DNA of 40,614 bases, from assembly GCA_038496445.1 (NCBI GenBank), contig JALMLS010000522.1, forward strand, positions 1 to 40,614, given 5' to 3'. Every line of letters starts with the position of its first letter. The stretch's first letter is position 1. The position numbers and the translations under genes were made by a program. A model generated the notes under the pieces. That model searched no databases. It worked only from the letters and a program-made list of their open reading frames with translations, and had not been told where the DNA came from. This document shows positions 1-40,232 of the stretch, in pieces. This DNA is from Trichosphaerium sp. ATCC 40318. Its lineage: Eukaryota > Protista > Tubulinea.

Positions 1-632
1 TATATTTTAAAAGCCCTTATACCGTCTTTTGTGATATTAGAACTTCTTGAAAGACCAAGAGATTCTACACTTGCAAGAGACTTATATCCTTCATCAGTAA
101 TCAAACCACATCCATGTACATCAACTCTTAACAACCAAGAAGAAACTGCCTTTATGCCAACATCAGAGACTGCTGTATACCTGACACTAAGCACTCTTAC
201 ACCTGCTAAAGGAATTATACCTTTATCAGTAACTTGAGTATCGTTCAGCCTTATACTAAAAACACCAGCAAGAGCTTGAATGCCCTCATCTGTAATCAAT
301 TGACAACTATCAAGACTTATTGTATGTACACCTGATAGTGCCTTTAGACCCGTGTCTGTAACATCAGTACGATCAAGACAAATAGCATGAACACCAGCGA
401 GTGCTGTGATATCATCATTTGCAGTTTGCATCGTTATCTTTGTGTTTTTCAAAATAGCCTTGTATTTTTTTACAGTATTGACATCAGAAGGCTTAATTGT
501 AGCTTTATCATAACCCACAACGTTATGTATTGTGTCAGCGAGAAGCTTACACACTTGTGAAGCAATATATCGTTCTGTACCTATAAACAGTAGTATATGC
601 GCCAATATCTCAGGTGGTAGGCTTAGCATCAT
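1..632 (-). CDS. F-box + cysteine-containing LRR protein, 3' end beyond window (absent from ORF track)
   Basis: Minus-strand translation from ATG 632: MMLSLPPEILAHILLFIGTERYIASQVCKLL (F-box), then repeats such as VTDTGLKALSGVHTISLDSCQLITDEGIQALAGV. Frame is open to the window edge. Paralog of 8237-9250. Confidence 0.85.
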   Translation of the reverse strand, partial: MMLSLPPEILAHILLFIGTERYIASQVCKLLADTIHNVVGYDKATIKPSDVNTVKKYKAILKNTKITMQTANDDITALAGVHAICLDRTDVTDTGLKALSGVHTISLDSCQLITDEGIQALAGVFSIRLNDTQVTDKGIIPLAGVRVLSVRYTAVSDVGIKAVSSWLLRVDVHGCGLITDEGYKSLASVESLGLSRSSNITKDGIRAFKI

Positions 633-8236: not shown

Positions 8237-9250
8237 TCAGAACACATAGCAAGTACTTCTCAATGAGTTCACACATTGGACTGTAACAGCAGTATCATCA
8301 AGTGATATTACTGCAACACCTATGAGTGATTTGACACCTTCATCCGTTATGCCTTTACAGCTGGTAAGAAGAATGGTATGAACACCAGAAAGAGCTTTGA
8401 GACCTTCATCTGTAACTGACGTTCCAGAAAGACCAATAGTGTGAACGCCAGCAAGTGCTTTGACACCTTCATCTGTTATTGAAGTATAATGGAGGTAAAT
8501 AGTATGAACTCCAGCAAGTGCTTTAACCCCTTCATCTGTAACAGGAGTTCCAATGAGGATAATATCATAAACGCCTTTTAGTGCTACAATACTTTCATGT
8601 GTTACTTTAGTGTATCTGAGGTTTATAGAGTGAACACCAGCAAGTGTGGATACGTCAGTTACTTGAGTATCAGCGAGGTTTATGCTATAAACTCCAGTAA
8701 GATATTTGACACATTCATTTGTTACTGATGTGCCAGAAAGATCAATGGTATGAACACCAGATAGAGCTTTGACACCTTCATCTGTTATTAAAGTGCCACA
8801 AAGACTGATTGTATGAACACCACAGAGAGCTTGTATACCTTCGTCAGTTATGTTCATGCACTTTTCAAGTCTAATCTTTTGAACTCCAGCAAGAGATTTA
8901 ATACATTCATCTGTTACGGGAGTGTCAATAAGATCAATGGCATGAACACCAGAAAACTGTTTGACAACAGCATCATAATCTTCAAAAGCTGTAAGTTTGA
9001 CTATGGTATGTCGTAGAGTGGCCCGATGTTTTAATAGTGCAGTTGCTTGTTCAGTATTCTTAATGGTAACTCTTTCATATCCAACAACGTCATGAATGAT
9101 AGAAGCAAGAAGAAAGCACGTTTGTGCAGCTGCGAACCGTGCTTTTGTGACGTTTCGTAAAATATGCGCTAAAATCTCGACAGGAAGGTCTAAAAGGCTC
9201 GTTGGTGCGGCGGGATGTATTGGAGCTAATTCTACAATTTCTTTTGACAT
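8237..9250 (-). CDS. F-box + LRR protein, intronless
   Basis: LLDLPVEILAHILRNV...AAQTCFLL F-box; regular 24-aa repeats VTDEGVKALAGVHTIxLxxT. Confidence 0.92.
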   Translation of the reverse strand: MSKEIVELAPIHPAAPTSLLDLPVEILAHILRNVTKARFAAAQTCFLLASIIHDVVGYERVTIKNTEQATALLKHRATLRHTIVKLTAFEDYDAVVKQFSGVHAIDLIDTPVTDECIKSLAGVQKIRLEKCMNITDEGIQALCGVHTISLCGTLITDEGVKALSGVHTIDLSGTSVTNECVKYLTGVYSINLADTQVTDVSTLAGVHSINLRYTKVTHESIVALKGVYDIILIGTPVTDEGVKALAGVHTIYLHYTSITDEGVKALAGVHTIGLSGTSVTDEGLKALSGVHTILLTSCKGITDEGVKSLIGVAVISLDDTAVTVQCVNSLRSTCYVF

Positions 9251-9628
9251 TGCGTTGTATGAGCGCCACGAGATGCTATTAAGGTAGAAGCGTTAAGGAG
9301 GTATGATGTTTTGATAATGCAGCCTGTACTTAACGTATTGAAATATCCAGACAATGTCGTATGTTGCAGCGCTAAGACTTCTTGTTAAAAGGCCACTCCG
9401 ATTTGTAGCACGTGACTTGGTCAAATCCGTAGAAATATTCTGTTATTAGTAAGCACATTTATAATATAAATCAACCTAAGGTACAAGGATATCACATACT
9501 CCATGGCATACACAATGAAAAAATGGATTTATGTTACTACACTATCATGTCTTTGAGTGAATAAAGAATTTGACCTTGATGAAAAGATTTAATGGACAAA
9601 ATAATAAAGCTAGCTACAAACGGATTGT

Positions 9629-19140: not shown

Positions 19141-19212
19141 AGGCTCCACCCGGAGTCGAACCGGGGTCACATGTACCAAAAACACGTATGATAACCGTTA
19201 CACCATGGAGCC
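19141..19212 (-). tRNA. trnQ: tRNA-Gln(TTG)
   Basis: Reverse complement folds as a cloverleaf: GGCTCCA/TGGAGCC acceptor stem, CGTGT-TT-TTG-GT-ACATG anticodon arm, CCCGG-TTCGACT-CCGGG T arm, discriminator T, TTTT terminator 7 nt downstream. Confidence 0.93.
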
Positions 19213-20021
19213 ATTTGTTGATAATAAAGTGCAGAGACGCAATACCGATCGAAAAAATATGCCTTGCAGAACTACCCAAACCAACGAAATAGTGTAGCCT
19301 TACATATTTTCGCAGTATAACTCCATACTAGTACGTACGAGGGAAAACCAATCACGAGAGTGCTGCAGTTGAACCAAAACAAATAACGCGGTAATTTGTA
19401 AATATTAGTAGCGGTAAGACCGTGATAAGCCATCTGCAAGGAGAATAGGCAAATAACCATCAAATACTACTAAAAACGCTTTGTCGCATTTAGTTCATTC
19501 TAGGCTTACCAGCTGTAAACACGTTTTAGCTTCCTGCTGAGTTTAAGGTGTTTGGCGCGGTGCGTCGGTTTTGTTAAACTACACCCAGTGGTGTCGATAC
19601 GCTCAGAAGTGGATATGTATTCACTAATACCATGAACAATCTATCGTTTAACGGAAACGAGTTTTGGTGGCAAAATCTTTCAACACTGTAGGACATGGCG
19701 CCAGCTGATAACGTGTGTTAGTGCTGGCAGTGTTAGTTTTCCATTGGTACACTGTAAACGAACAAAAATCAAACAATACAAATGGTTTTGGCATCGAAAA
19801 TCTGATTGAATTCAAGCAACTAAAGAAGAGTTAGCAATCTCCCAATACACGCAAGACGTTCTTTGTGATCTCCTTTTATTATCCATGATTGAAAGATATC
19901 AATCAGATGGCCTGGTATCGGACTTTGGTTGAAAAGCGAAAACGACGAAATTACAGTATTTATTTCATTATTTACAAACACAACAAAGTGAACAACAACA
20001 GCGAAAACAACTTCTCTAACA

Positions 20022-20511
20022 ATGAATCAAGCACACCAACGTATCGATAATGCTATAGTAGACTTGTTCGAGAATTTCTCTTCCGAAGCCTATGATAGAT
20101 TGGGCAACGAACTAGAAGCCGAATACGACGTCAATATACCTGCCACAGCTGGAAGGAGTCGCCCTGCTAATCATTCGGCTGAAGCAATACAAGTCATGGA
20201 AGAATATCCTTACAACTCTTTATTTGGAAAAATCAATCATTTGTAATTTTTTGTTTTTTCTTTCTTCTGTTTTAATCTTTATACATCGTTCTCCTTAACT
20301 CTTACTCACTTGGTATACACCTAACATACCTGAGCCATACCCTAAGTATCATGAGAAGCTCGTACTCGCAAGAGACTCTGGTCTAACTGTAGCACAAGTT
20401 AGTACTTGGTTTGCTAACATGCGCGCACGCCGTGGGCACACTAGAACTAAAAAATGCACCGAGGATTCAATAGCAGCCACTCAAACCGAAAGATTAGTCG
20501 ATACTGAATAA
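20022..20511 (+). CDS. TALE homeodomain protein HB1 (B-type); exons 20022-20203 and 20310-20511
   Basis: After removing the AT-AC intron: RPANHSAEAIQVMEDWYTPNIPEPYPKYHEKLVLARDSGLTVAQVSTWFANMRARRGH. PYP loop; collinear with paralogs at 34728-38111. Confidence 0.9.
20204..20309 (+). other. U12-type (minor spliceosome) AT-AC intron, 106 nt
   Basis: 5' site ATATCCTT, branch site TCCTTAAC at 20292-20299, terminal AC at 20308-20309. Removal restores GA|T = Asp and the MEDWYTP motif of the paralogs. Confidence 0.93.
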
Positions 20512-20983
20512 AAACAGTAGCATTGACGTAATTCAATTGTGAGATAGTATTATGTAATGCAAATAAACTGACAGCTTGATATTCGCAACTTGTAGTAATT
20601 TTATTCTTTTTTTGGACTTTTTTTGTACCACTTTTTAAACTATCGCGTTCGGGTTTTAAACAACAGTTTGCCTTAGAATATTATCTAAAGCGTGCCTTCG
20701 TAACCACTAGAAAGCGTAATCTGCTACGTTGATAGAATTCTAATTGATTAGTTCGTAATCAATCTATTGCTCTCAATGGCTCTTATATTCGCCGCTATCA
20801 ATCACCTCACGCTGTACCAACACTCTCAAACTACCACCAGATGATTTCTAAACACGGCCAAAAGCAACTGTAGCTTTGGGAAAATACAACGCCGATAATC
20901 TTTCAGATTCTAATTTTATTCTTGACATACTATAATACATTTTCCAACATTACCAAAAATGGAACGCAGGAAGAAGTCTTAAA

Positions 20984-22646
20984 CTACAACAATGCTAAAT
21001 GAAGCTGTAGGGATACTTCTTTGTTCTTTAACGAGGTAGCTTTACCCAAAGCATCTCGTCCAACAGTTAAAATTTGCTCCCAATCATTAACAACAGCAGA
21101 AGCATGCGTTAAAGTATCGCCTAATGCTTTAGAATCGGTTATAAGCTTCTGTTGATCATCTATTATCCTTGTAGACTTTTGAAGTAGAACACTCGCTTCT
21201 TCTAGCTTTGTTCTAACTTGTGGTTGATCTAGCTTAACATTATCACGAACTCTCATCATTTGAGCGACTTGGTTCACTTTCACGCTCATTTTTTTGTATT
21301 TTTCGAGACAAGCCGTTAATTCCTTTTCAAACGAAAACAAGTTCGTGGCTTGCACAGAAACAATAGAATCACCAAAAGCCTAAACGGAAACTCAGAGCGA
21401 ACAAAAAAAGACAAAAGAGGATAAAAGAAGTGATTGATTTTACAGATCTGTAAATTCCTGCGGTTGTTGGTACGGAAAACTCACCTTTTGTTTGCTGTTT
21501 TCCAGTTCAGCAGATTGTTTTTTGAGCTGTGTACGAAGTTGTGAAACATTCTTTGATACAGCATAAATTTCACCCTAGGAAATCGTGTCAGCGTGCACAT
21601 TAGTTCGTAAGAGTCGTACGAGGGTATTTGCTGTATTCGCTTTTTTGGCGAGTGCCGCATTTTTGTTCATGAGTTGCCATTGAAGGAGCTGGGTTTGTAG
21701 AAGCTCTATACGCTTCATTTTGGTATCCTTAGACTTTTCCATTCCCATTCGGACTCGCTATAAAAAAATTAAACAAACATTTTAAAAACAAGTTGTTCCG
21801 GGCTTCTACACGAACAGAAAAAATTGAAAAAAATGCCACGCTATGCACATAATACTAATGTACTCATAGAAAACTTTTGAGCTTCAAACGATTTGATACA
21901 AACGCGCGAAAAATCGGTAAATAAAAATAGCATTTTAAATCCGAACGTACTGTCGTTAACTTTGAACGTTGCGGTTTGTTTTGTGCTGGTTTGGTAGTAG
22001 TATTGACTCTACGCTTTCTTACAACAGGAGTTTTTGTAAGAAAAGCTCTGGCCTGATTTCTTGCATTTTCACTTGCAAACGCGCTATTTCGTACTGGTTT
22101 GCGCTTCTTCATCGAAGAACGAAGCGTACCAGCTACTACCGGCTTTGGCTTTCGTTTGTGGGCCCAGTCACCTGTATGGTGGCCGTGAGTCGTCGTTCAA
22201 AGCTTTGATTTTAACGTACGTGTTATCATCGTTGCGCGTCTTCCGTTTGGTGCTGGTTGGCGTTTTTGCAGAGCGGCAGGAAGCATTGTAGCTCTTCGTG
22301 TTTGTAGTGGCGGAAGTTGAGTAAGCGGCTTCCTGGTTTTCTTTGTGGTTGATGACGGTTGCATGTAACGTGAAGCAACATGTTTAACTACAATTCAGTG
22401 TGAGCAATTTTACCGTTATTCTTTCTTTACCTCTTCTACGCTTTGCGGTAGATGGCGCTGCAGTGCGTTTTGGTACAGTTTTTCGGTTATACGGCGTTTC
22501 AAGCAGAATATCATCAGTGGGTAGCCGGCGTTGCTTTTTTGCTAACAAATATAAGGTTTAAAGACATAGTTTGTTAGCGATTTACTTGTAGAGCTAAATA
22601 ATCGCTTTTGAACAGATCCAAATGGCGTTTGCGACGACATAGACAT
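20984..22646 (-). CDS. HAUS8: Augmin subunit 8 / QWRF-family microtubule-binding protein, multi-exon
   Basis: Basic low-complexity N-terminus with VASRYMQ (22379-22359, cf. the V/I-x-SRY-L/M motif), KRIELLQTQLLQWQLMN (cf. QWRF-family LLxxxLLQWxxxN), coiled-coil C-terminus. Exon boundaries only partly traced. Confidence 0.7.
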
Positions 22647-23227
22647 GATACGATCAACGCGGGAAACAGCGAGTGGTGTTTTCAAACTAAGTCTGAAATG
22701 TGGTTGGTTCTTCCCTGACGCTAGGTTTTAGTAGCCGATAATACTTTACTGACTCGCTAGTATTGATAGGAAGTATGTAGGGCTAGAACGATTACTAAAA
22801 CAATTTTGCAGAAAAACGTTGTTCCGTTGATGGAATAGTGATTGATAACATTAAATCGCTCTGACCATTAATACACTTTTGTGCTGAACTATTATACGTG
22901 GTGTTTTAGACGCTCCAAATGTAGTGTTGTCCGATTTCACATCTTTCCTCTTTTGGAGTTTGAACAAGCGGAAACAGTTTTTGCTGTACCCCACGAGCAT
23001 CTTGACGCGTGGGTCAATCGTTTGAGAAGTTAGATTGTGCAAAAATCAGTTTTCATCTTGATTGAAAGTTTGTAATTTTGTCTTCGTCTCATTCGAGTCT
23101 ACACACCACAAAACGCCGTCCTAGGAGAAGTTGGGTTTTGCCTAATAAGTACCATTTTCACCCAAATTCGCTTCAAATCATTCATTATATCCAAACAACT
23201 CAACAACAACACCTCCTCTTCAATAAC

Positions 23228-24695
23228 ATGGCCGAACAAAAGAATAGCAGCTCTTCCGTCGATAAACAAGTCATCAATCTTGCAACTGGCGTTCGTGATG
23301 CTCTTATCATCACTCCAAAACGAGAAGTTCCAGCTATTGTACCCCAACTGACGAGAGATGAAGTAACGAACAGATTAAAAGGCCAAATACCAAGCGAAAA
23401 AATGCAACAAAAAGTCTATTGGCTTTTCTCACAGTACGTTTCAGCTCTCACCAGACTCGAAGAAATCGTAGAAGAGAAAGTAGCAGAGACCAAAGCAGTA
23501 CTAGAAGAACCTGAATTGGCTCAACTATTTCCAGAAGCTCTGAAAAAGTTGAAGCTACACCTCGTATCTGCAAAGTTCAATGTTGTTCGCCTTCAGTATC
23601 AAGAACGACTTCGCATAGCCATTAACACCGAAATCAAACGTCAAAGTGTGCTTCCTATTCACGTCAGAAGAATTCCTCTTCGTGCTACTCGTATTCTAAC
23701 TAACTGGCTATTCGTACATGCAGCAGTAAGTTACTATTTTTATTTTTACATTTCTCAATCAATCATGATTTTTCGTCAAACGATATGAACGAACTCTTTT
23801 TTCTGATTTTTCTAACGTTTTACCCTAGAACCCTTACCCAACTGAAGCAGAGAGACAAAAGCTTGGGTTCGTATGTGATTTGACTTGGCAAAGAGTAAAG
23901 ACGTGGTTCAACAACAACAGAAATCGTCGCCGTGCTGACTTACAAGCATGGCTTGTTGCTCGCGGTGTCGTTCCTACTCCAATCGCCCAAAGACGTCACC
24001 GGCCAAGCACACCAGTTCGCGTAGCTAATCCTCCACGTCCAGCTCGTCCTGCACGTATTCGTCCTGTTCCAACTGTAACAGCACCTGTACCATCGGCTGC
24101 TACTGCTATTTCTCCTTCTGCTTCTCTCGATGTTCCTCGCACCAAACCTGCCAGACCTAAGCGTACACCTAAACAAAAGAAAACCAAGAAAGTGAAGAAA
24201 CTGGTTGAAATTAAGAAAGAGAAAAAGTATGTCATTGAAGAAAAGCCTCTAGCGCAAATCAACAAACCTCCTGAACCGCAAGCTTTTTCGGGATTACATC
24301 TCCCAGCGATTAACAACACCATCAATATCGTATATCCAATGACAAGTACGTTTTTCGCTTCAGAGTCTTTAGATAAAGAACTAACATCTACTTTTTTAGC
24401 TACTCTTCCACCGGACACCCTCACGGCACCAGTGCTCGAGTTCCATGATGCTTACATTAAAGAAGAAACTAACATTCTCACCGACGGAATGCCACCAAGT
24501 GATGTAGATGAAGAAATGGTCACGTTCCAAGAACCGCAGGAAATGTTGATGGAGCCTTTCGGATTGTTTTCCATCTCGAGAGGAACCAACATCGATACAG
24601 ATGGTATCAACGAAGCTAATGCAGAGGAGCGTGTGGACAGTTTTGTGAATGGCATGGTAGACAACTTTGTATTTCGTCCAAGTGACCGCAATTAA
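23228..24695 (+). CDS. TALE homeodomain protein HB2 (A-type, PBC-like N-terminal domain); introns 23726-23828 and probably 24346-24399
   Basis: RRIPLRATRILTNWLFVHAA|NPYPTEAERQKLGFVCDLTWQRVKTWFNNNRNRRR, then a basic Pro-rich linker and acidic C-terminus. Confidence 0.92.
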
Positions 24696-25275: not shown

Positions 25276-28200
25276 ATGGCTGAAAACAAGATTAATAAGC
25301 AAGTATTCGATCTCTCAAAGCAGTTTTGTAAAGCTGTAACTATCACCCCTCAACGACCAATTCCAGCGCTAATTCCGCAACTATCCAAACAAGAAGTATT
25401 CGCAACGTTTGCTGAGCAACTAACCAGTACAATCCTCGTTCAAAAAGCGACTTGGCTTTTCAATCAGTACCTCAACGCTCTTACAAAACTCGAAGTTATT
25501 GTACAGGATAAGGTTGCAGACGTATCATATGAGCTAGCGAAGCCAGTGATAGCAGATTTGATCCCAGTTGAATTGAAAAAAATGAAACTCCACATTGTTT
25601 CAATCAAGTTTAACTGTGTTCGTCTCTCATACCAAGAAAGACTCTTGGCGGCTATTACAACCGCGATTGAACACCAACGTGGGTTACCTACTGGAGTTAG
25701 GAGAATCCCAGCGAACGCTCATAGAATTCTTACGAATTGGCTCTTTGTACATGCTGCAGTACGTATTTTGTACAATAAACCTACCTGTACTGACTTTTCT
25801 CATAGAATCCTTACCCAACCGAAGCAGAAAGACAAAAACTCGCATTTGTATGTGACTTGACATGGGCGAAAGTAAAAACGTGGTTCAACAACAACAGGAA
25901 TCGCCGTCGTGAGGACCTTCAAGCATGGCTTATTGCTCGTGGTGTTACTGCTCCAATCGCTCAAAGACGTCGCGGGCCAAACCCACCAGTTCGCGCAGCT
26001 AATCCACCACGTCCAGTTCGTGCGCCAAGTGCTAGCAACCGCAGAAGAAGAAATCCTGCCACCAATCGTGTTTGTGCTCCTGAACCTGTACCTGTTCGTA
26101 CAACTGCTCAAACCGTAATTCCGTCCATTACTGTTCCCGCACGCACCAAACCTGTGACCGCGAAGCGAACACCTAAACAACGGAAGATAAAAAAGGAGAA
26201 AAAAGTGCAAATGATCAAAAAAGAAAAAAAGACGCTTCATAGAACTAGAAGACGTACTCCACCTGCTAGAACTAGAGGCAATCCACCGAGTGTTACAAAC
26301 AATACCAAGCATAAGGTCATAGAGTCTCCTGTTCCAGTTATCAGTAACGCTGTCAACGCCTTCCCTTTGACAAGTACGTCTGTTTCTAAAGATATTTTGT
26401 CTAATTTATTTTGTAGCTTCCTTTCCTGATATTCTCATGGCACCAGTACTCCCGTTCGATGATTCATTCACCTATGAAGGAACCAATGTACTTACCACTG
26501 GAATGATTCAAACTGACATGGATGAACACATGGGTTACACGACTTCAACTATGTTCCAAAGTCCTCCAGCAGCGATGTTTAAACCTATCGGAGAATTGTC
26601 TGTACCAAGAAACGGTACACATAAGGCCCTTAGCACTGGCTGTGATGAACCTAAGGTTGAAAAGCGTATAGAAACCGGAGAGACAGAAAAATCCCCGGAA
26701 AATAGCGAAAATTCCCAAGGTCGGGATTTTTCGTTGTTTGAGTATTGGTTCTCCCCTAGTTTCAATGCAGTTGGTTATACCAGTAGCCAAGTTGCCAGCG
26801 CTAGTACATGAGTTCAGCAGTGAGCACACAGCGTTCAATGGTCTCTGGTTGTGCAAAAAAAAAGGTAAAAAAGTGCAGGGATTACGATGTGGCGGAGGCA
26901 TCAAAAAATGCAAAGGAGTGCTAGGAGGAAGCAAGTTTTCAAATCCACGGTTTGCCGGTTTAGATGCAATACAGCATTTTAAAATACCTGCCGATAGAAA
27001 TGGTTCACGAGGTAAACTCTGTTCAGAAGTTTTAGAGTGCAAAAGCTGTGATAATTGTACTTGCGAACTAACTTGGGTGATTTACCTCACGGATTTAACT
27101 ACAGCGCACGTCACCTTGAATGGGAATCACAATACTTCCTTTAAAGCCAAACAAAATATATCAAAAGAATATTACGTATACTTAGTGCGCACTCTCGAAA
27201 GTATACTCTCACTAAATAAACGCTAGGTACGTAAACAATTTAATTTAGAGGATGAATTTGGAACAACGAGGAGATATGGACGTGCATCACCAGGGCAGTT
27301 TTTAAACAACACTAGAGTACAAATCATACGGCAACTACAACAAAACAAATTAATTCAAAACCCAACCCTTAAACAGTGGATCCTACCAACACGTCAAGTT
27401 AGTGATTGGCAGCGAGAGAATCGTGCAATAAAACCGTAAGTATCTTTATTGTTTTATTAACATTTACCCTTTAACTAGGACAACAAGCATTATCGATGAA
27501 ATACGAACTACTCTAAATGACCCAACTATCAAACCATACATTTTGTATCCAAGAATTGCAGCGCACATGCCAACCAATGAAAAAAGCAACTTTGTAGCAG
27601 TGTTCACCACTCCAAAATCATTGAAGCTTTTACAACAACATGGCAGTGACATCATTGGACTTGATAGCGTGTATAAATTTAACGCTTATTCATTTCCTAT
27701 CTGGGGAATCGTATGTGAAGAGCCAAAAACCAAGCGAGGTTTACTTTGTGCATTGGCTATTGCATCAAGCAGCAAAGCTGAAAACATAGAGTGCTTTTTA
27801 TCAGCAATAAAAGCAAAATTGAACAGTACGTAAATAAAGGAACTTTATTGCTAACACGTTCATTGTTATAGCTAAAAATCGCGTTTGGAACCCGTACGTT
27901 ATGATTGACAAAGATAATGCAGAACAAGCAGCCCTTGTTAGTGTCGGGTTACGTTATTTGTTATGTACCTTTCATTATCGCCGCACAATAGGCCAATATG
28001 TGCGAACTACGTTCAAAAGCGACTCTGACTCAAAACTATAGTGCGTGTACCTTTCTATGTACTCCAATAACACTGGTGTAGTCAAGAAATAACAGACCAG
28101 CTCCGTCTACTTGAGCGTGCTAGATCAGACGAAAACTTGACCACGCTTGAACAAAGTTTTAAAGAATGGTGCAAAGCAAGGACAACTGTTTGGAAAGAAA

Positions 28201-32967: not shown

Positions 32968-34387
32968 ATGTCTTCAGTTGATCAAGAAGTAATCAATCTT
33001 GCTCACCAAACTCGTAATGCACTTGTTATTACTAAAAAACGCGATGTTCCATCGATTGTACCAAGGCTAACAAGAAATGAAGTCATGGATAAACTGGAAG
33101 GTCAACTAACGAGTGAACTACTTGTAGAGAAAGTCTCTTGGCTTTACGCTCAATATATTTCAGCACTAAAAAAGCTTGAAGTAATTGTTGCAAACAAAGT
33201 TAAAGAGACAAAAGACGTACTAGAAGAACCTGAAATGGCTAATTTGTTCCCCGAAGAACTAAAAGACCTTAAATTACACCTTATATCTGTAAAGTTTAAC
33301 GTTGTTCGCGATAATTACCAGGAACGGCTTCGCAACGCCATTACCAGGGAATTAAAACGCCAAAGCGAGGTTCCTGAGGCAACAAAAAGAATTCCAAAGC
33401 GTGCAACACGCATACTTACAAACTGGCTCTTCAAAAACGCGGCAGTACGTTTTAATACCTTATCGTAGACTAACGTCAAATAGAATCCTTACCCAACTGA
33501 AGCGGATATACATAAACTTGGATTTGTATGTGACATGACATGGGCCAAAATTAAGACATGGTTCAACAACAACCGTAATCGCCGCCGTGGAGACTTACAA
33601 AAATGGCTTGTCGATCGTGGTATTATTCCTACTCCTAAAACATCAAAAGCTCGTCGCAAAAAGAACCTTTCCGGTATCCCAGCTGGTAGTGCGAAGCCTC
33701 TGAGAGCTAAACGTAGACCTAAATTAAAAGCCAAGAAAGTGCAAAAAAAGCCAGTAGAAAAGGAAGTTGTTGTTGTTGAACAACCGCCTCCTCAGTTCTT
33801 TCCTGCCACTCAACCATCTCCTGAACCTCAACCTATTCCTATCGATCTCACCAACGAACTTTCTCAACCTCAGGCCGTTCCTATGGATGTAACCAACGAA
33901 CAATCTCAAACTATATTATTCCCTGTCGTACAAAGCCAACCTCCTCAACCTCAATTTACTCCAGCAAATGAAGATCAATTTGATATCCTTTCAATTCCAC
34001 CTTTACCAATGCTCGTGGATGATATTCATCTTGACGGTGCATTGCCAAGTACGTTTTTACGCTTACAAACGGAATGATCTTGTTCTGATAGTTTTTTTAG
34101 CTTCTTATTTTGAAGATACGTTACCACTGCCACTGTTCGGTGTTGACGATATACACAAAAACGAACCTGACTTCTTCAACAACGAGATGTCCGGTTTTGA
34201 TATGGATGAAGACATGGGATACAGTAACATGCCTACTGCATTCCAAGATTCGCCAGACATGATGTTCAATGCTATGGGAGAATTAACTTTACCAAACTTG
34301 TACACTGATGATTTCAACAATAGCCGTATCCCTGAAAAAACAGCAGATCCTTTCTTCTATCATACCATGGATGCTGAATATATTTAG
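32968..34387 (+). CDS. TALE homeodomain protein HB5 (A-type); introns 33445-33483 and 34049-34100
   Basis: KRIPKRATRILTNWLFKNAA|NPYPTEADIHKLGFVCDMTWAKIKTWFNNNRNRRR; P/Q-rich and acidic C-terminus. Confidence 0.92.
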
Positions 34388-34727: not shown

Positions 34728-35261
34728 CTATTTCTCGGTCTTCACACGTTTGAGCGCTCTTTTGTTTCTTTCGGCTTCCATACGGCGTTTATTGTCCTTC
34801 TTGGTATGTCCACGGCGACGACGGGTATTTGTGAACCACACCTTAACTTGAGCAACGCGCAGACCAGCTATTTCAGCGATTTCAATACATTGACCATGAT
34901 TTGGATATGGTAGTGGAATGTGAGGAGTGTACCAATCTTCCATGACTTGAATGGCTCTTGAAACATGGTTTGCTGGACGATTGTGACCATTCGTGTGTGG
35001 AATGGCAGTGTTGTATGTGTTTTCGTAGTGAGTGAGCATTGCATTAATATTGTTGAGGAGACCTTGCTGTTGATCTCTTGCTATCTCTTGCAACAGGTTG
35101 CTAACAATGTTGTCACGTTTTTCAACAATGCTAAGGCACATTTTTGTGAATTTTTCAACGATAGCTGAATCGACGTGTGAGATATCAGGAGCGAATCCAA
35201 TTACTTTATCGCCGTTGATCTCTACTAGCTTCTTGTATGCTTCAAATGCCATGTTGTTCAT
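34728..35261 (-). CDS. TALE homeodomain protein HB6 (B-type), intronless
   Basis: RPANHVSRAIQVMEDWYTPHIPLPYPNHGQCIEIAEIAGLRVAQVKVWFTNTRRRRGH. Confidence 0.93.
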   Translation of the reverse strand: MNNMAFEAYKKLVEINGDKVIGFAPDISHVDSAIVEKFTKMCLSIVEKRDNIVSNLLQEIARDQQQGLLNNINAMLTHYENTYNTAIPHTNGHNRPANHVSRAIQVMEDWYTPHIPLPYPNHGQCIEIAEIAGLRVAQVKVWFTNTRRRRGHTKKDNKRRMEAERNKRALKRVKTEK

Positions 35262-35419
35262 GTTGATGATGAGGTGTTGTTGTACTATTGCGATAATAAT
35301 GATTGTTTGAGTGTAAAATTTTAGACAACCAAATTCTAATTCACTGTTGATTGGTTTGCTTCTATTTTTACTTATTTTCCATAAAAAGCGCTAAATATAT
35401 AATCAATCTAAACGTTTGT

Positions 35420-36063: not shown

Positions 36064-36597
36064 CTATTGTTCAGTTTTTACACGCTTCGCTTTGCTTTCT
36101 TCTTTTATTGAAGCCAATTTGCGTTTGTTTTCCTTGTGGGTATGTCCACGGCGACGGCGGGCGTTGATAAACCACACTCTGACTTGAGTAACACGTAGTC
36201 CAGCTTGCCTAGCGATTTGAATGTACTGATGATGATCTGGATATGGCTGTGGAATGCGAGGAGTGTACCAATCTTCCATGACTTGAATAGCATCTGCTGA
36301 ATGATTCGCTGGACGATTGTGACCATTTGTGTCAGGTATTGCAACATTGTAGGTGGTTTCGTAGTGGTGAATCATCCCTTGAAGGTCCTTGAGAGGTGAC
36401 TGTTCTTGATCGGTTGTTATCTCTTGCAAAAGGTTGGCAACAATCTTGTCACGTTTTTCAACAAAGTTGAGACATATTTTAGTGAACTCTTCAACGAGAG
36501 CTGAAGCGACGTGTGAGATATCAGGAGCGAATCCAATTACTTTATCGCCGTTGATTTCTACTATCTTCTTGTATGCTTCAAATGCCATGTTGTTCAT
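36064..36597 (-). CDS. TALE homeodomain protein HB8 (B-type), intronless
   Basis: Start MNNMAF by homology with HB6; IQVMEDWYTPRIPQPYPDHHQYIQIARQAGLRVTQVRVWFINARRRRGH. Confidence 0.93.
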   Translation of the reverse strand: MNNMAFEAYKKIVEINGDKVIGFAPDISHVASALVEEFTKICLNFVEKRDKIVANLLQEITTDQEQSPLKDLQGMIHHYETTYNVAIPDTNGHNRPANHSADAIQVMEDWYTPRIPQPYPDHHQYIQIARQAGLRVTQVRVWFINARRRRGHTHKENKRKLASIKEESKAKRVKTEQ

Positions 36598-37571
36598 GTT
36601 GATGATGAGGTGTTGTTGTTGTACTATTGCGATAAAAATGATCGTTTGAGTGTAAAATTTTAGACAACCAAATTCTAATTCAGTGTTGATTGGTTTGCTT
36701 CTATTTTTATATATTTTCCTTTCAATTTGATGGACGAATACTATCAATCTATACACATGATTGATACACTTGTTTGGATCAACAGAGGTGAGAGGTTCGA
36801 AAAAATCAATCATCACTGAACAAAAACAAGCTTCTTTCTTGAGCAGAAACTGAGCTTTCTAGCGTTTACTACCAAGTACTACGTTGATTGTGTTCTTGGT
36901 TTCGTAGTTTAAAGTTTAGCCTAACTCTAACAAATGTTCATTCTAGACAATAACAACATTGTGGCATAGTTCGTAACGCTCAGAAAGTTCACATAGGAAC
37001 TCTATCAATCTGAATAAAACAAAATCTCAAACCAATCACCGCTGATCGAAAACAGCTTTCACTCACAAACTGGAAAACGGAATAATATCAATCTATCGTC
37101 GACCTGATAAGCAGCAATTTTTTGTTTACAGAAACATGCAAAGCGACTGGTACAAAAGAGTCGTAGGTCGAAAAACCGCGTCGGGGGAACAAAATGACTT
37201 CATTTTACACAAAGATAACCTCTTTTAGTCGAAAACAACAAAAAACAGCTTTAGGAGCTCGGTTTACAGTATTGACGGGAAATATGTAACAACAGAACAG
37301 TTTGTAAGGTAATGAGAGCAATCTTGCGTTCTTGCAATTCCAAAACGAGCATGTTTTGAATTTCGGCGTTTTACATCCTTACCCGACCTGGGAAGGATAT
37401 CTACAAGCTACCAGAGGTAGCCGAGAATACATACCGTACATTAAACACTCTCTAATGTACCGAAAAGAGAAATAAAAAAAGAACTCGAGAAAATACAAAT
37501 TAGGCGATTTTTAGTTACAAAATATTCGTTTTTATTAATTTAACAAGGGTTGTAATAGATAAAAGAATACA

Positions 37572-38111
37572 TTATTCGTCTGTATCATTCTTTGCTCGTT
37601 TTGCATTTCTTTTTGCTTTTTCAGCTTCCATTTTACGTTTGAGGTCCTTCCTTGTATGTCCACGGCGACTGCGTGTGTTAGAGAACCATACTCTTACTTG
37701 AGGAATAGATAGCTGCGCATTTTCAGCGATTTCGACTATTTGGTGGCGATCTGGATAAGGTAGTGGAAGATGTAGGGTGTACCAAGATTCCATTACTTGA
37801 ATTGAGGCACGCGAATGAGCCGCTGGGCGAACGTTACCTTTTTCGACAGGTATAGCTGGGTTATAAGTGTTTTCATACTGGCGGAGCATCCCGTTAATGT
37901 CGTTTAGCGGTGATTGTTCTTGGTCTCTTGCTATTTCTTCCAGAAGGTTGGCAACACTTTGTTCACGTTTTTCTACCAAGTCGAGGCAGGAGAAAACGTA
38001 TTTCTCAATGGTGGCTGGGTCAATGTGTGATATATCAGGTGCATCACCAATTACTTTATCACCGTTGATTTCTACTAGTTGCTTGTATGCTTCGAATGCC
38101 GTGGTGTCCAT
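37572..38111 (-). CDS. TALE homeodomain protein HB9 (B-type), intronless
   Basis: Start MDTTAF by homology; IQVMESWYTLHLPLPYPDRHQIVEIAENAQLSIPQVRVWFSNTRSRRGH. Confidence 0.93.
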   Translation of the reverse strand: MDTTAFEAYKQLVEINGDKVIGDAPDISHIDPATIEKYVFSCLDLVEKREQSVANLLEEIARDQEQSPLNDINGMLRQYENTYNPAIPVEKGNVRPAAHSRASIQVMESWYTLHLPLPYPDRHQIVEIAENAQLSIPQVRVWFSNTRSRRGHTRKDLKRKMEAEKAKRNAKRAKNDTDE

Positions 38112-39110
38112 GTTGATGAGGTGTGGTTGTAGTGTGATTGAAATTATATTGATATTTTTTGAGTGTAAAAAGTTGAGGTGGCCAAATTCTCGTTCACTGT
38201 TGATTGGTTCTGATAGATTTTTCGCCAATCGAGTGACACTATTATGAGCATACACTGTAAACAACGAAATAGCATTGCGGCTGTACAGGTATAGCCAGTT
38301 TAATCTCAAACTGGAACAGCTTTCGGACAAATATTAAATTCACAAAACTAACAATGAGCTAACAGCGTGCAAACATACGCTCATGTAGTTTTTAGAAAAC
38401 ATCGAGAGCGATTTATGAGATATCAATCAAACTCAATCAGCACTGAATTTGTTCCTTCTAATCGCTCACTTCGTCGTATCAATCTACGAGTTCACATTTT
38501 GAATATACTTTTAAAAAAAGCGCTATCTTTTTTAAAACCAATCTATAGTACAAAATACGCGTTGGTGGATAATATACGAACGTTCTACAGTATATATAAG
38601 CACATTGAATTCGTTGCAAAAAAAAAATACAACCCACGCAGTAATGTTTATGTCTGGGTCCTGTACTAGCAAGCTACGAATATTTTCGTTCGTGGGAACC
38701 TTTTTGGGAGTTGTTTCCACGCCAATTCCAAAACTAGCAAGTTCCGATTTCTGCATTTTACGTCCTTTCCGTACGTGAACAGAATTTAACAACAAAGCTA
38801 CCGTTCGATAAACAGGTTTCCGGCGCAAAATGCATCATACGGAATTTTTTTATTTTAAAACATCGATACAGACACAGTTTACTGTCGAGGTGTACTTCTA
38901 GTAGCATACAAAGCATTAATAAGAGTAAACTGTTAGATGGTTACAATTGCAGAGGCGTTAAATAAAACTAAAACAAAATCGCTAAACGAGTGCATCTACG
39001 CCTAGGGATACCATAACACAAAACAAAACAAGTATTATAAATCAATTATTTAATTGTCATTACATTTTTTTTGTACAATACCGCTGGCGATGCGCCATAG
39101 GCACAAGAGC

Positions 39111-39632
39111 TTACTTCTTCTCTTGTTTGGTTTTTTGACGCTTGGCAGCTTCTTTCGCTGCTTCTTCCTCGCGTTTACGCTTAGCTCTTGCTTCCTTGAT
39201 ACGAGTACGCCTGTTCTGAAACCACAAGCTTACTTGCCCTTCCTTTAAACCGCACTCAATAGCGATAATCTTCTTTTCTTGAGCTGTAATATAAGTTTTC
39301 TTGTTGTACCATTCCATTAGATAGTCAACAGTATCTTGTGGATGATTTCTTGGACGTCTTCTGCGAGGTGGAGGAGGTAGGTTTTCACCAGTTGCCTCAT
39401 TGTCGAATTGCTCATACAACACGTCGTCTTGGCCGAGTCCAAGGTTGGCTATCATACTTTTGATCATGTGTTCTGATTCGGCATCGATGGCAGATTGTTC
39501 GTGGATAGATAGTGCGCAAACTTGTTGCACTTCAAGGCTGTTAATGTCACCCAAGGATTCTGCGTCAAATTCAACGGTTTCGGATGTATTCATTGTAACC
39601 ATTTTCTCTATCATTGTAGCTGTTGTTGTCAT
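39111..39632 (-). CDS. Non-TALE (60-aa, Q50) homeodomain protein HB10, intronless
   Basis: RRRPRNHPQDTVDYLMEWYNKKTYITAQEKKIIAIECGLKEGQVSLWFQNRRTR; no three-residue loop extension. Start taken at MTTTAT; an upstream in-frame ATG exists at 39722. Confidence 0.9.
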   Translation of the reverse strand: MTTTATMIEKMVTMNTSETVEFDAESLGDINSLEVQQVCALSIHEQSAIDAESEHMIKSMIANLGLGQDDVLYEQFDNEATGENLPPPPRRRRPRNHPQDTVDYLMEWYNKKTYITAQEKKIIAIECGLKEGQVSLWFQNRRTRIKEARAKRKREEEAAKEAAKRQKTKQEKK

Positions 39633-40232
39633 TTTGTTGAGAGTTGTTGTTTCGACTGTTTGAGTTGTGAATAATGAATTCTTCGAGCAGAAATTTGGCA
39701 AAAATTGGCGTAGGTTCTTCATGTAATGTACTAGAATTTACTATCAATCATACCCTTTTATAGCCTAAATCAATGAAAAATAGGGCATGTGAATAGGAGG
39801 AAAGTGTGTATCCTTTCGGAACGTGGAAGGTAAAAACCAATATTTGAATTTTCCTTGATAGAAAAGTATATCACTCAGAAAGTTGGCCGCTCCACATCAA
39901 CCCAAAATAACTCTATACGATAATATTAACGTGTTTACAGGCATTCAGTAAGTGTGACCACGCTCAATAAACGTAGAAGACAGCAAAACCACAAGAATTG
40001 ACAAATAAATTCTGGGAGATATCAAAACGGCTGAGCTTTGTAAACACGCCGACCTTAAAGAACTACGCACATACACATTTTACACCATTGTTTGAGGCGG
40101 TTTAAAATAAAACCAAATAAACTCAATTTCGCAAAACAAAGCTTGCATTGTACACAATACATAAAATGAGTGTCAAGAAAATGGTTTTTATTAAACTTAC
40201 ACTTTTCCAAATATAGCAAGATTAGAACACTA

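Follow-up and report, generated by a model that had tools for sequence, protein, structure and literature searches.

Canonical U12-type AT-AC introns, such as those of human, Arabidopsis, Acanthamoeba, Protostelium and Physarum, have an RTATCCTT donor and AT-AC termini, carry the branch-point sequence TCCTTAAC near the 3' end, lack a pyrimidine tract and are precisely removed; the intron described here shares all of these features. A few AT-AC introns are U2-type, and the donor of these differs. The U12 expansion in Physarum polycephalum is seen as a recent gain, possibly via a transposon, for which inverted termini and a target duplication have been proposed. Outside Physarum, gain or loss of minor introns is to our knowledge considered very rare. 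In Amoebozoa more than 20,000 minor introns were counted in Physarum polycephalum, 265 in Protostelium, 90 in Pelomyxa and a few in Acanthamoeba, and most minor introns are found in ancient genes (PMC10639083). The published U12 consensus comprises the donor [G/A]TATCCTT and the branch site TTCCTT[G/A]AC (10.1101/2020.10.12.336362). Moreover, a U12 AT-AC intron interrupting the coding sequence of a transcription factor of the homeodomain type has been described for Drosophila prospero, where it lies at the homeodomain and contains nested U2 sites, forming a twintron (PMC3564746). In the literature searched we found no report linking Trichosphaerium with U12. For other Amoebozoa minor splicing is well documented, and the present intron adds one more case.

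The window analyzed here comprises 40,614 nucleotides of the marine amoeba Trichosphaerium sp. ATCC 40318 (contig JALMLS010000522.1) and has a GC content of about 38%; for the draft genome a GC content of 37.69% and a mean intron length of 75 nt were reported (PMC10521059). On the plus strand at 20204-20309 we identified a phase 2 intron of 106 nt, which is, with very little doubt, a genuine U12-type AT-AC intron splitting an Asp codon of a small expressed TALE homeobox gene. This assignment is based on sequence reading, transcript contigs, paralogues and shuffled sequences. The intron starts with AT (20204-20205) as part of the 5' splice site ATATCCTT (20204-20211), which follows the U12 consensus RTATCCTT, and it ends with the terminal AC at 20308-20309. 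The branch-point sequence TCCTTAAC (20292-20299) lies within TTCTCCTTAAC and is similar to TTCCTTRAC; from its end to the last intron base 20309 there are only 10 nt (tcttactcac). Due to this short gap there is no space for a polypyrimidine tract downstream of the branch site, and reading of the sequence revealed none. Donor and branch site, both also assessed by motif counts, agree with the published consensus (10.1101/2020.10.12.336362). The initial annotation had already placed donor, branch site and terminal AC at these positions, and our reading of 19600-21200 returned the same coordinates throughout.

Joining 20203 to 20310 reunites the split codon GA/T (Asp) and gives MEDWYTP. The exact restoration of this motif, as first claimed, was reproduced by translation, in which exon 1 ends ...IQVME and is followed by GA/T and WYTP. 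Retention of the intron leads to an open reading frame of 74 amino acids with a stop codon at 20244-20246, and thus the homeodomain-less peptide of this length ending at 20246 was also correctly predicted. Sequence reading revealed no AG dinucleotide anywhere in 20204-20309. Alternative GT-AG models were considered and rejected, as the nearest GT...AG pair removes WYTPNIPE and wrecks the homeodomain, and the intron itself lacks an AG.

Removal of the intron was observed in two transcript-like contigs, X1 and X2, which derive from two small public runs of one sample and one study from 2023 and were compared with positions 19300-23300 of the window. X1 has a length of 1060 nt and is about 98% identical to the window, with 255 letters on the shorter side of the 20203/20310 joint, while X2 has 237 nt, is 100% identical and has 84 letters on the shorter side. 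Each contig joins 20203 directly to 20310 and skips 106 letters with the ends AT..AC, without any positional ambiguity (both = 0). The junction proposed by the initial annotation is therefore present in contigs of two runs from one sample, which provides direct transcript-level support for splicing of a classic AT-AC minor intron in this amoeba. Judged from the about 2% of positions at which it differs from the window, X1 is another allele or copy. This difference, together with a library type that is not on record for the runs, would be in line with a joint that reflects DNA, namely a copy without the intron, or a retrocopy, located at another genomic site or in a different strain. However, X2 shows no difference from the window on either side of the joint, and X1 additionally skips 78 letters with the ends GT..AG at 19331-19408 (plus strand), a U2-type intron (GTACGT...TAG) in the 5' leader. 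Moreover, contigs from a DNA library would be expected across the adjacent 2.7 kb (20640-23300), but neither run covers this region. Because X1 lacks this second intron and the adjacent region is uncovered, the contigs are probably RNA-derived. The runs, being small and from 2023, also agree with the single-cell transcriptomes of Trichosphaerium released in that year (PMC10521059). An RNA origin, although deduced here and not stated in the run record, fits these observations, which are hard to explain as DNA; we therefore regard a DNA copy as a very improbable source of the joint and splicing as its cause.

In the coding sequence three differences between X1 and the window were listed (20436, 20442 and 20448). 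All of them are synonymous third-position changes, which fits a gene under purifying selection. The 5' leader showed more differences and an indel. Besides, at 19436-19566 and 19613-19750 two stretches of X1 (49 and 69 letters) did not match the window.

The U11/U12 and U4atac/U6atac snRNPs would recognize the donor and branch site, as in every intron that carries these signals. U11 and U6atac are expected to pair with the donor ATATCCTT and U12 with the branch site TCCTTAAC, and the branch point would be the second A of TTAAC, located about 11-12 nt upstream of the 3' splice site. It is reasonable to assume from these signals that the organism has a minor spliceosome. We found no minor snRNA gene in the window, where the only Rfam match was one tRNA (tRNA-Gln according to ARAGORN). 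This absence from the window, as well as the established existence of U2-type AT-AC introns, could speak for a removal by the major (U2-type) spliceosome. Nevertheless, we consider this highly unlikely, since the donor and a branch site 10 nt from the 3' end correspond to the U12 and not to the U2 consensus and a pyrimidine tract is absent after the branch site. In addition, local U2 introns start with GTACGT and end with AG, as found at 19331-19408 in a transcript and at 25760-25805 from the reading frame only. For annotation, U12-type splicing means that gene finders restricted to GT-AG would probably break or miss this gene, and that annotation of the TALE cluster should allow AT-AC introns.

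We also investigated how often such signals are expected by chance. The donor consensus RTATCCTT was found 11 times on both strands of the window compared to 2.09 expected occurrences, and none of 100 shuffles reached this number, while TCCTTAAC occurred four times compared to 1.34 expected. A strict signature was defined as ATATCCTT, followed by TCCTTAAC within 500 nt and by AC 6-13 nt further on, and its frequency was compared with 300 dinucleotide-preserving shuffles of the window. Two strict signatures were observed, at 20204 (plus strand) and 9492 (minus strand), whereas the shuffle mean was 0.0067 and only 2 of the 300 shuffles held even one. Most of the other RTATCCTT sites in the window had no convincing branch site or frame, leaving 9492 on the minus strand and perhaps 84 and 33983 on the plus strand as candidates. 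Since a branch site or frame was not recognizable at most sites, U12 introns explain the RTATCCTT excess only partly.

The site at 9492 belongs to another candidate U12 intron of the AT-AC type, 209 nt in length (9284-9492, minus strand; ATGGAGTATGTG/ATATCCTT...CCTCCTTAAC...AC). It is followed in phase 0 by 348 open codons leading into an F-box/LRR gene (ORF 8237-9250), and it would be either a 5'-UTR intron or preceded by a first exon of four codons. At the window edge, 84-146 (plus strand) is a possible AT-AC intron of 63 nt, and 33983-34049 (plus strand) is a possible AT-AG intron of 67 nt. Both have a ATATCCTT donor and a weaker branch site, and the frame permits both; the latter would fall in an A-type homeobox gene, within its C-terminal tail, which shows little conservation.

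The host gene encodes a product of 127 codons on the plus strand (20022-20203 and 20310-20511). Exon 1 starts with the ATG at 20022, comprises 60 codons and two bases of the Asp codon, and covers the N-terminal arm and the first half of homeodomain helix 1, ending ...AEAIQVME + GA. Its tail ...SRPANHSAEAIQVME agrees with ...NRPANHSADAIQVME of the paralogues. Exon 2 consists of the last Asp base and 66 codons and encodes the remainder of the TALE homeodomain followed by a short tail, as determined by translation and Pfam. The frame from 20311 reads WYTPNIPEPYPKYHEK..., corresponding to WYTPNIPEPYP..., up to the TAA at 20509-20511. Exon 2 alone matched PF05920 (Homeobox_KN) over positions 1-40 of 40 with 45.9 bits at a cutoff of 24 (E 5e-12). 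It contains the three-residue TALE extension with PYP (WYTPNIPEPYP), resulting in 31 residues from W to WF compared to 28 in the typical homeodomain of 39111-39722, as well as the WFxNxR motif of helix 3 (WFANMRARR). Counting back from PYP in the usual TALE numbering (PBX, MEIS) places the W at residue 19 and the split Asp at residue 18. Accordingly numbered, the intron lies at about homeodomain residue 18, within helix 1. Both the Homeobox_KN match on exon 2 and the paralogue alignment bear out the earlier assignment to helix 1 of a TALE homeodomain.

About 45 N-terminal residues of the paralogues are absent from the product. An upstream coding exon for these residues was sought and rejected, as tblastn found nothing upstream of 20037 and an in-frame TGA is located at 19989-19991. 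Therefore, the gene is simply shorter than its paralogues. In X1 the 5' leader at 19751-20021, which includes this TGA, is contiguous with exon 1 (piece 19751-20203). The leader is long and contains several introns, and in this contig it reaches beyond 19300. The 3' UTR (20512-20565) extends to the end of the contig (piece 20310-20565), and an AATAAA motif is found at 20562-20567.

The host gene is a member of a tandem homeobox cluster, whose other homeoboxes in the window were located by phmmer with exon 2 over all six-frame pieces. The closest paralogues are found on the minus strand at 36858-36067, 35390-34731 and 38333-37575, together with 40612-40397, which is cut by the window end. In all four paralogues the homeodomain is encoded in one unbroken frame and the intron is absent. 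The copies at 36858-36067 and 35390-34731 read ...NRPANH..AIQVMED/WYTP.IP.PYP..., and the copy at 38333-37575 reads ...IQVMES/WYTL..., likewise unbroken. At the DNA level the first two copies show ...caagtcatggaagat/TGGTAC (...catggaagat/TGGTAC), whereas the host gene has ...caagtcatggaaga, the 106 nt and TTGGTAT.... Moreover, blastn homology to 36339-36272 ends exactly at 20203, and the predicted junction 20203/20310 restores the sequence of the paralogue family to the residue. Since the paralogues run through the site unbroken, the 106 nt are an exact insertion relative to them.

The cluster showed further peculiarities. Among the TALE genes a gene with a typical 60-residue non-TALE homeodomain was found at 39111-39722 (minus strand; PF00046, 4-56 of 57, E 1.3e-11), and a TALE gene adjoining a non-TALE gene recalls HD1/HD2-type pairs. 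An A-type homeobox on the plus strand has an apparent U2-type GT-AG intron at 25760-25805 (gtacgt...catag) just before NPYP, as deduced from the reading frame only. If this intron is real, the A-type and B-type classes do not share intron positions, because the position in the homeodomain differs. In the B-type paralogues the specificity-determining homeodomain position 50 differs in each of the four genes compared (20022-20511, 36067-36858, 34731-35390 and 37575-38333), which read WFA-N, WFI-N, WFT-N and WFS-N. This variation suggests a diversified DNA-binding specificity.

Compared with canonical U12 introns, the intron at 20204-20309 is short, and its gene family is lineage-specific and looks young. 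Among the local paralogues only the 20022-20511 gene has it, and this paralogue-specific presence is the only point of wider interest, as the intron itself is otherwise fairly ordinary. With only one paralogue having the intron, either one gain in this lineage or at least two losses have to be assumed. In the exon 2 region the three complete intronless paralogues share 31-36 of 52 residues with each other and 22-26 of 52 with the 20022-20511 gene, whereas the trio and the 20022-20511 gene have just 14-19 of 52 residues in common with the cut 40612 copy. These pairwise identities suggest that the 20022-20511 gene is sister to the trio, with the 40612 copy outside. A maximum-likelihood tree of exon 2 only (52 columns) did not separate the group internally.

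A recent creation of the intron in this paralogue is a tentative reading, and we consider it possible but rather less probable than its opposite. It would mean that, in addition to Physarum, another amoebozoan lineage has gained a U12-type intron de novo, here with fully classic signals, and the five-fold RTATCCTT excess would then reflect continuing creation of minor introns. Similarities to Physarum polycephalum are the amoebozoan host and the local enrichment of U12-like donors (11 compared to 2.1 expected), and the paralogue-specific presence would fit a gain. In contrast to Physarum, the intron keeps the classic strict motifs, i.e. the TCCTT donor and a full branch site, instead of the transformed Physarum motifs, and it has neither inverted-repeat termini nor a TA duplication. 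An origin from a transposon or introner was rejected, as no terminal inverted repeats, no target duplication and no second copy in the window were found. The RNA fold of the intron was not significant (z = 0.21). If a recent gain is true, the de novo origin of a U12-type intron could be dated at this locus. With more copies or strains, gain versus loss of minor introns could be examined on a small scale in this family.

The initial annotation had further proposed that minor splicing could gate this factor. According to this reading, the homeodomain protein would be held back by minor splicing that is slow or restricted to certain stages, and transcripts retaining the intron would yield the 74-amino-acid product or be degraded by nonsense-mediated decay. 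The stop codon at 20244-20246 could point in this direction, as could the long 5' leader with several introns, a hint of post-transcriptional control, and slow U12 splicing has been reported in animals (PMC4066798). However, a premature stop upon retention is true of nearly every intron, and the four closest paralogues do without the intron. The retained form was not seen in the contigs, which were both spliced and as such cannot show rates or retention. In the Physarum study, minor introns of this U12-rich amoebozoan were described as efficiently spliced (10.1101/2020.10.12.336362). Taken together, the proposed gate found no supporting evidence here, and we regard it as unlikely.

A U12/U2 twintron was likewise not found, since 20204-20309 contains no AG and only one joint was seen in the contigs. 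The homeodomain of prospero belongs to a different class (homeo-prospero), and the position of its intron differs from that of 20204-20309. As the intron has no AG, no prospero-like alternative product is expected but only removal or retention.

Around the host gene some further features were observed. X1 extends at least 130 nt further to the left than 19300, and a tRNA-Gln(TTG) gene was predicted by ARAGORN at 19141-19212 (minus strand), at a distance of about 800 nt upstream of where homeobox translation starts, so that the long leader may pass antisense over or near it. An upstream open reading frame at 19908-20050 (plus strand), out of frame with the homeobox gene, opens with an ATG (MAWYRTL...) and spans the main start codon at 20022. 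It might reduce the translation of the homeobox protein. A HMMER search against 1.84 billion representative proteins revealed no close relative and no self hit; since the intronless paralogues were absent as well, the missing self hit carries no information on annotation. The best matches were multi-homeodomain proteins with 35-49% identity. These best-matching proteins (P0001, P0002, P0009 and P0025) have an unusual architecture of 3-10 tandem TALE homeodomains.
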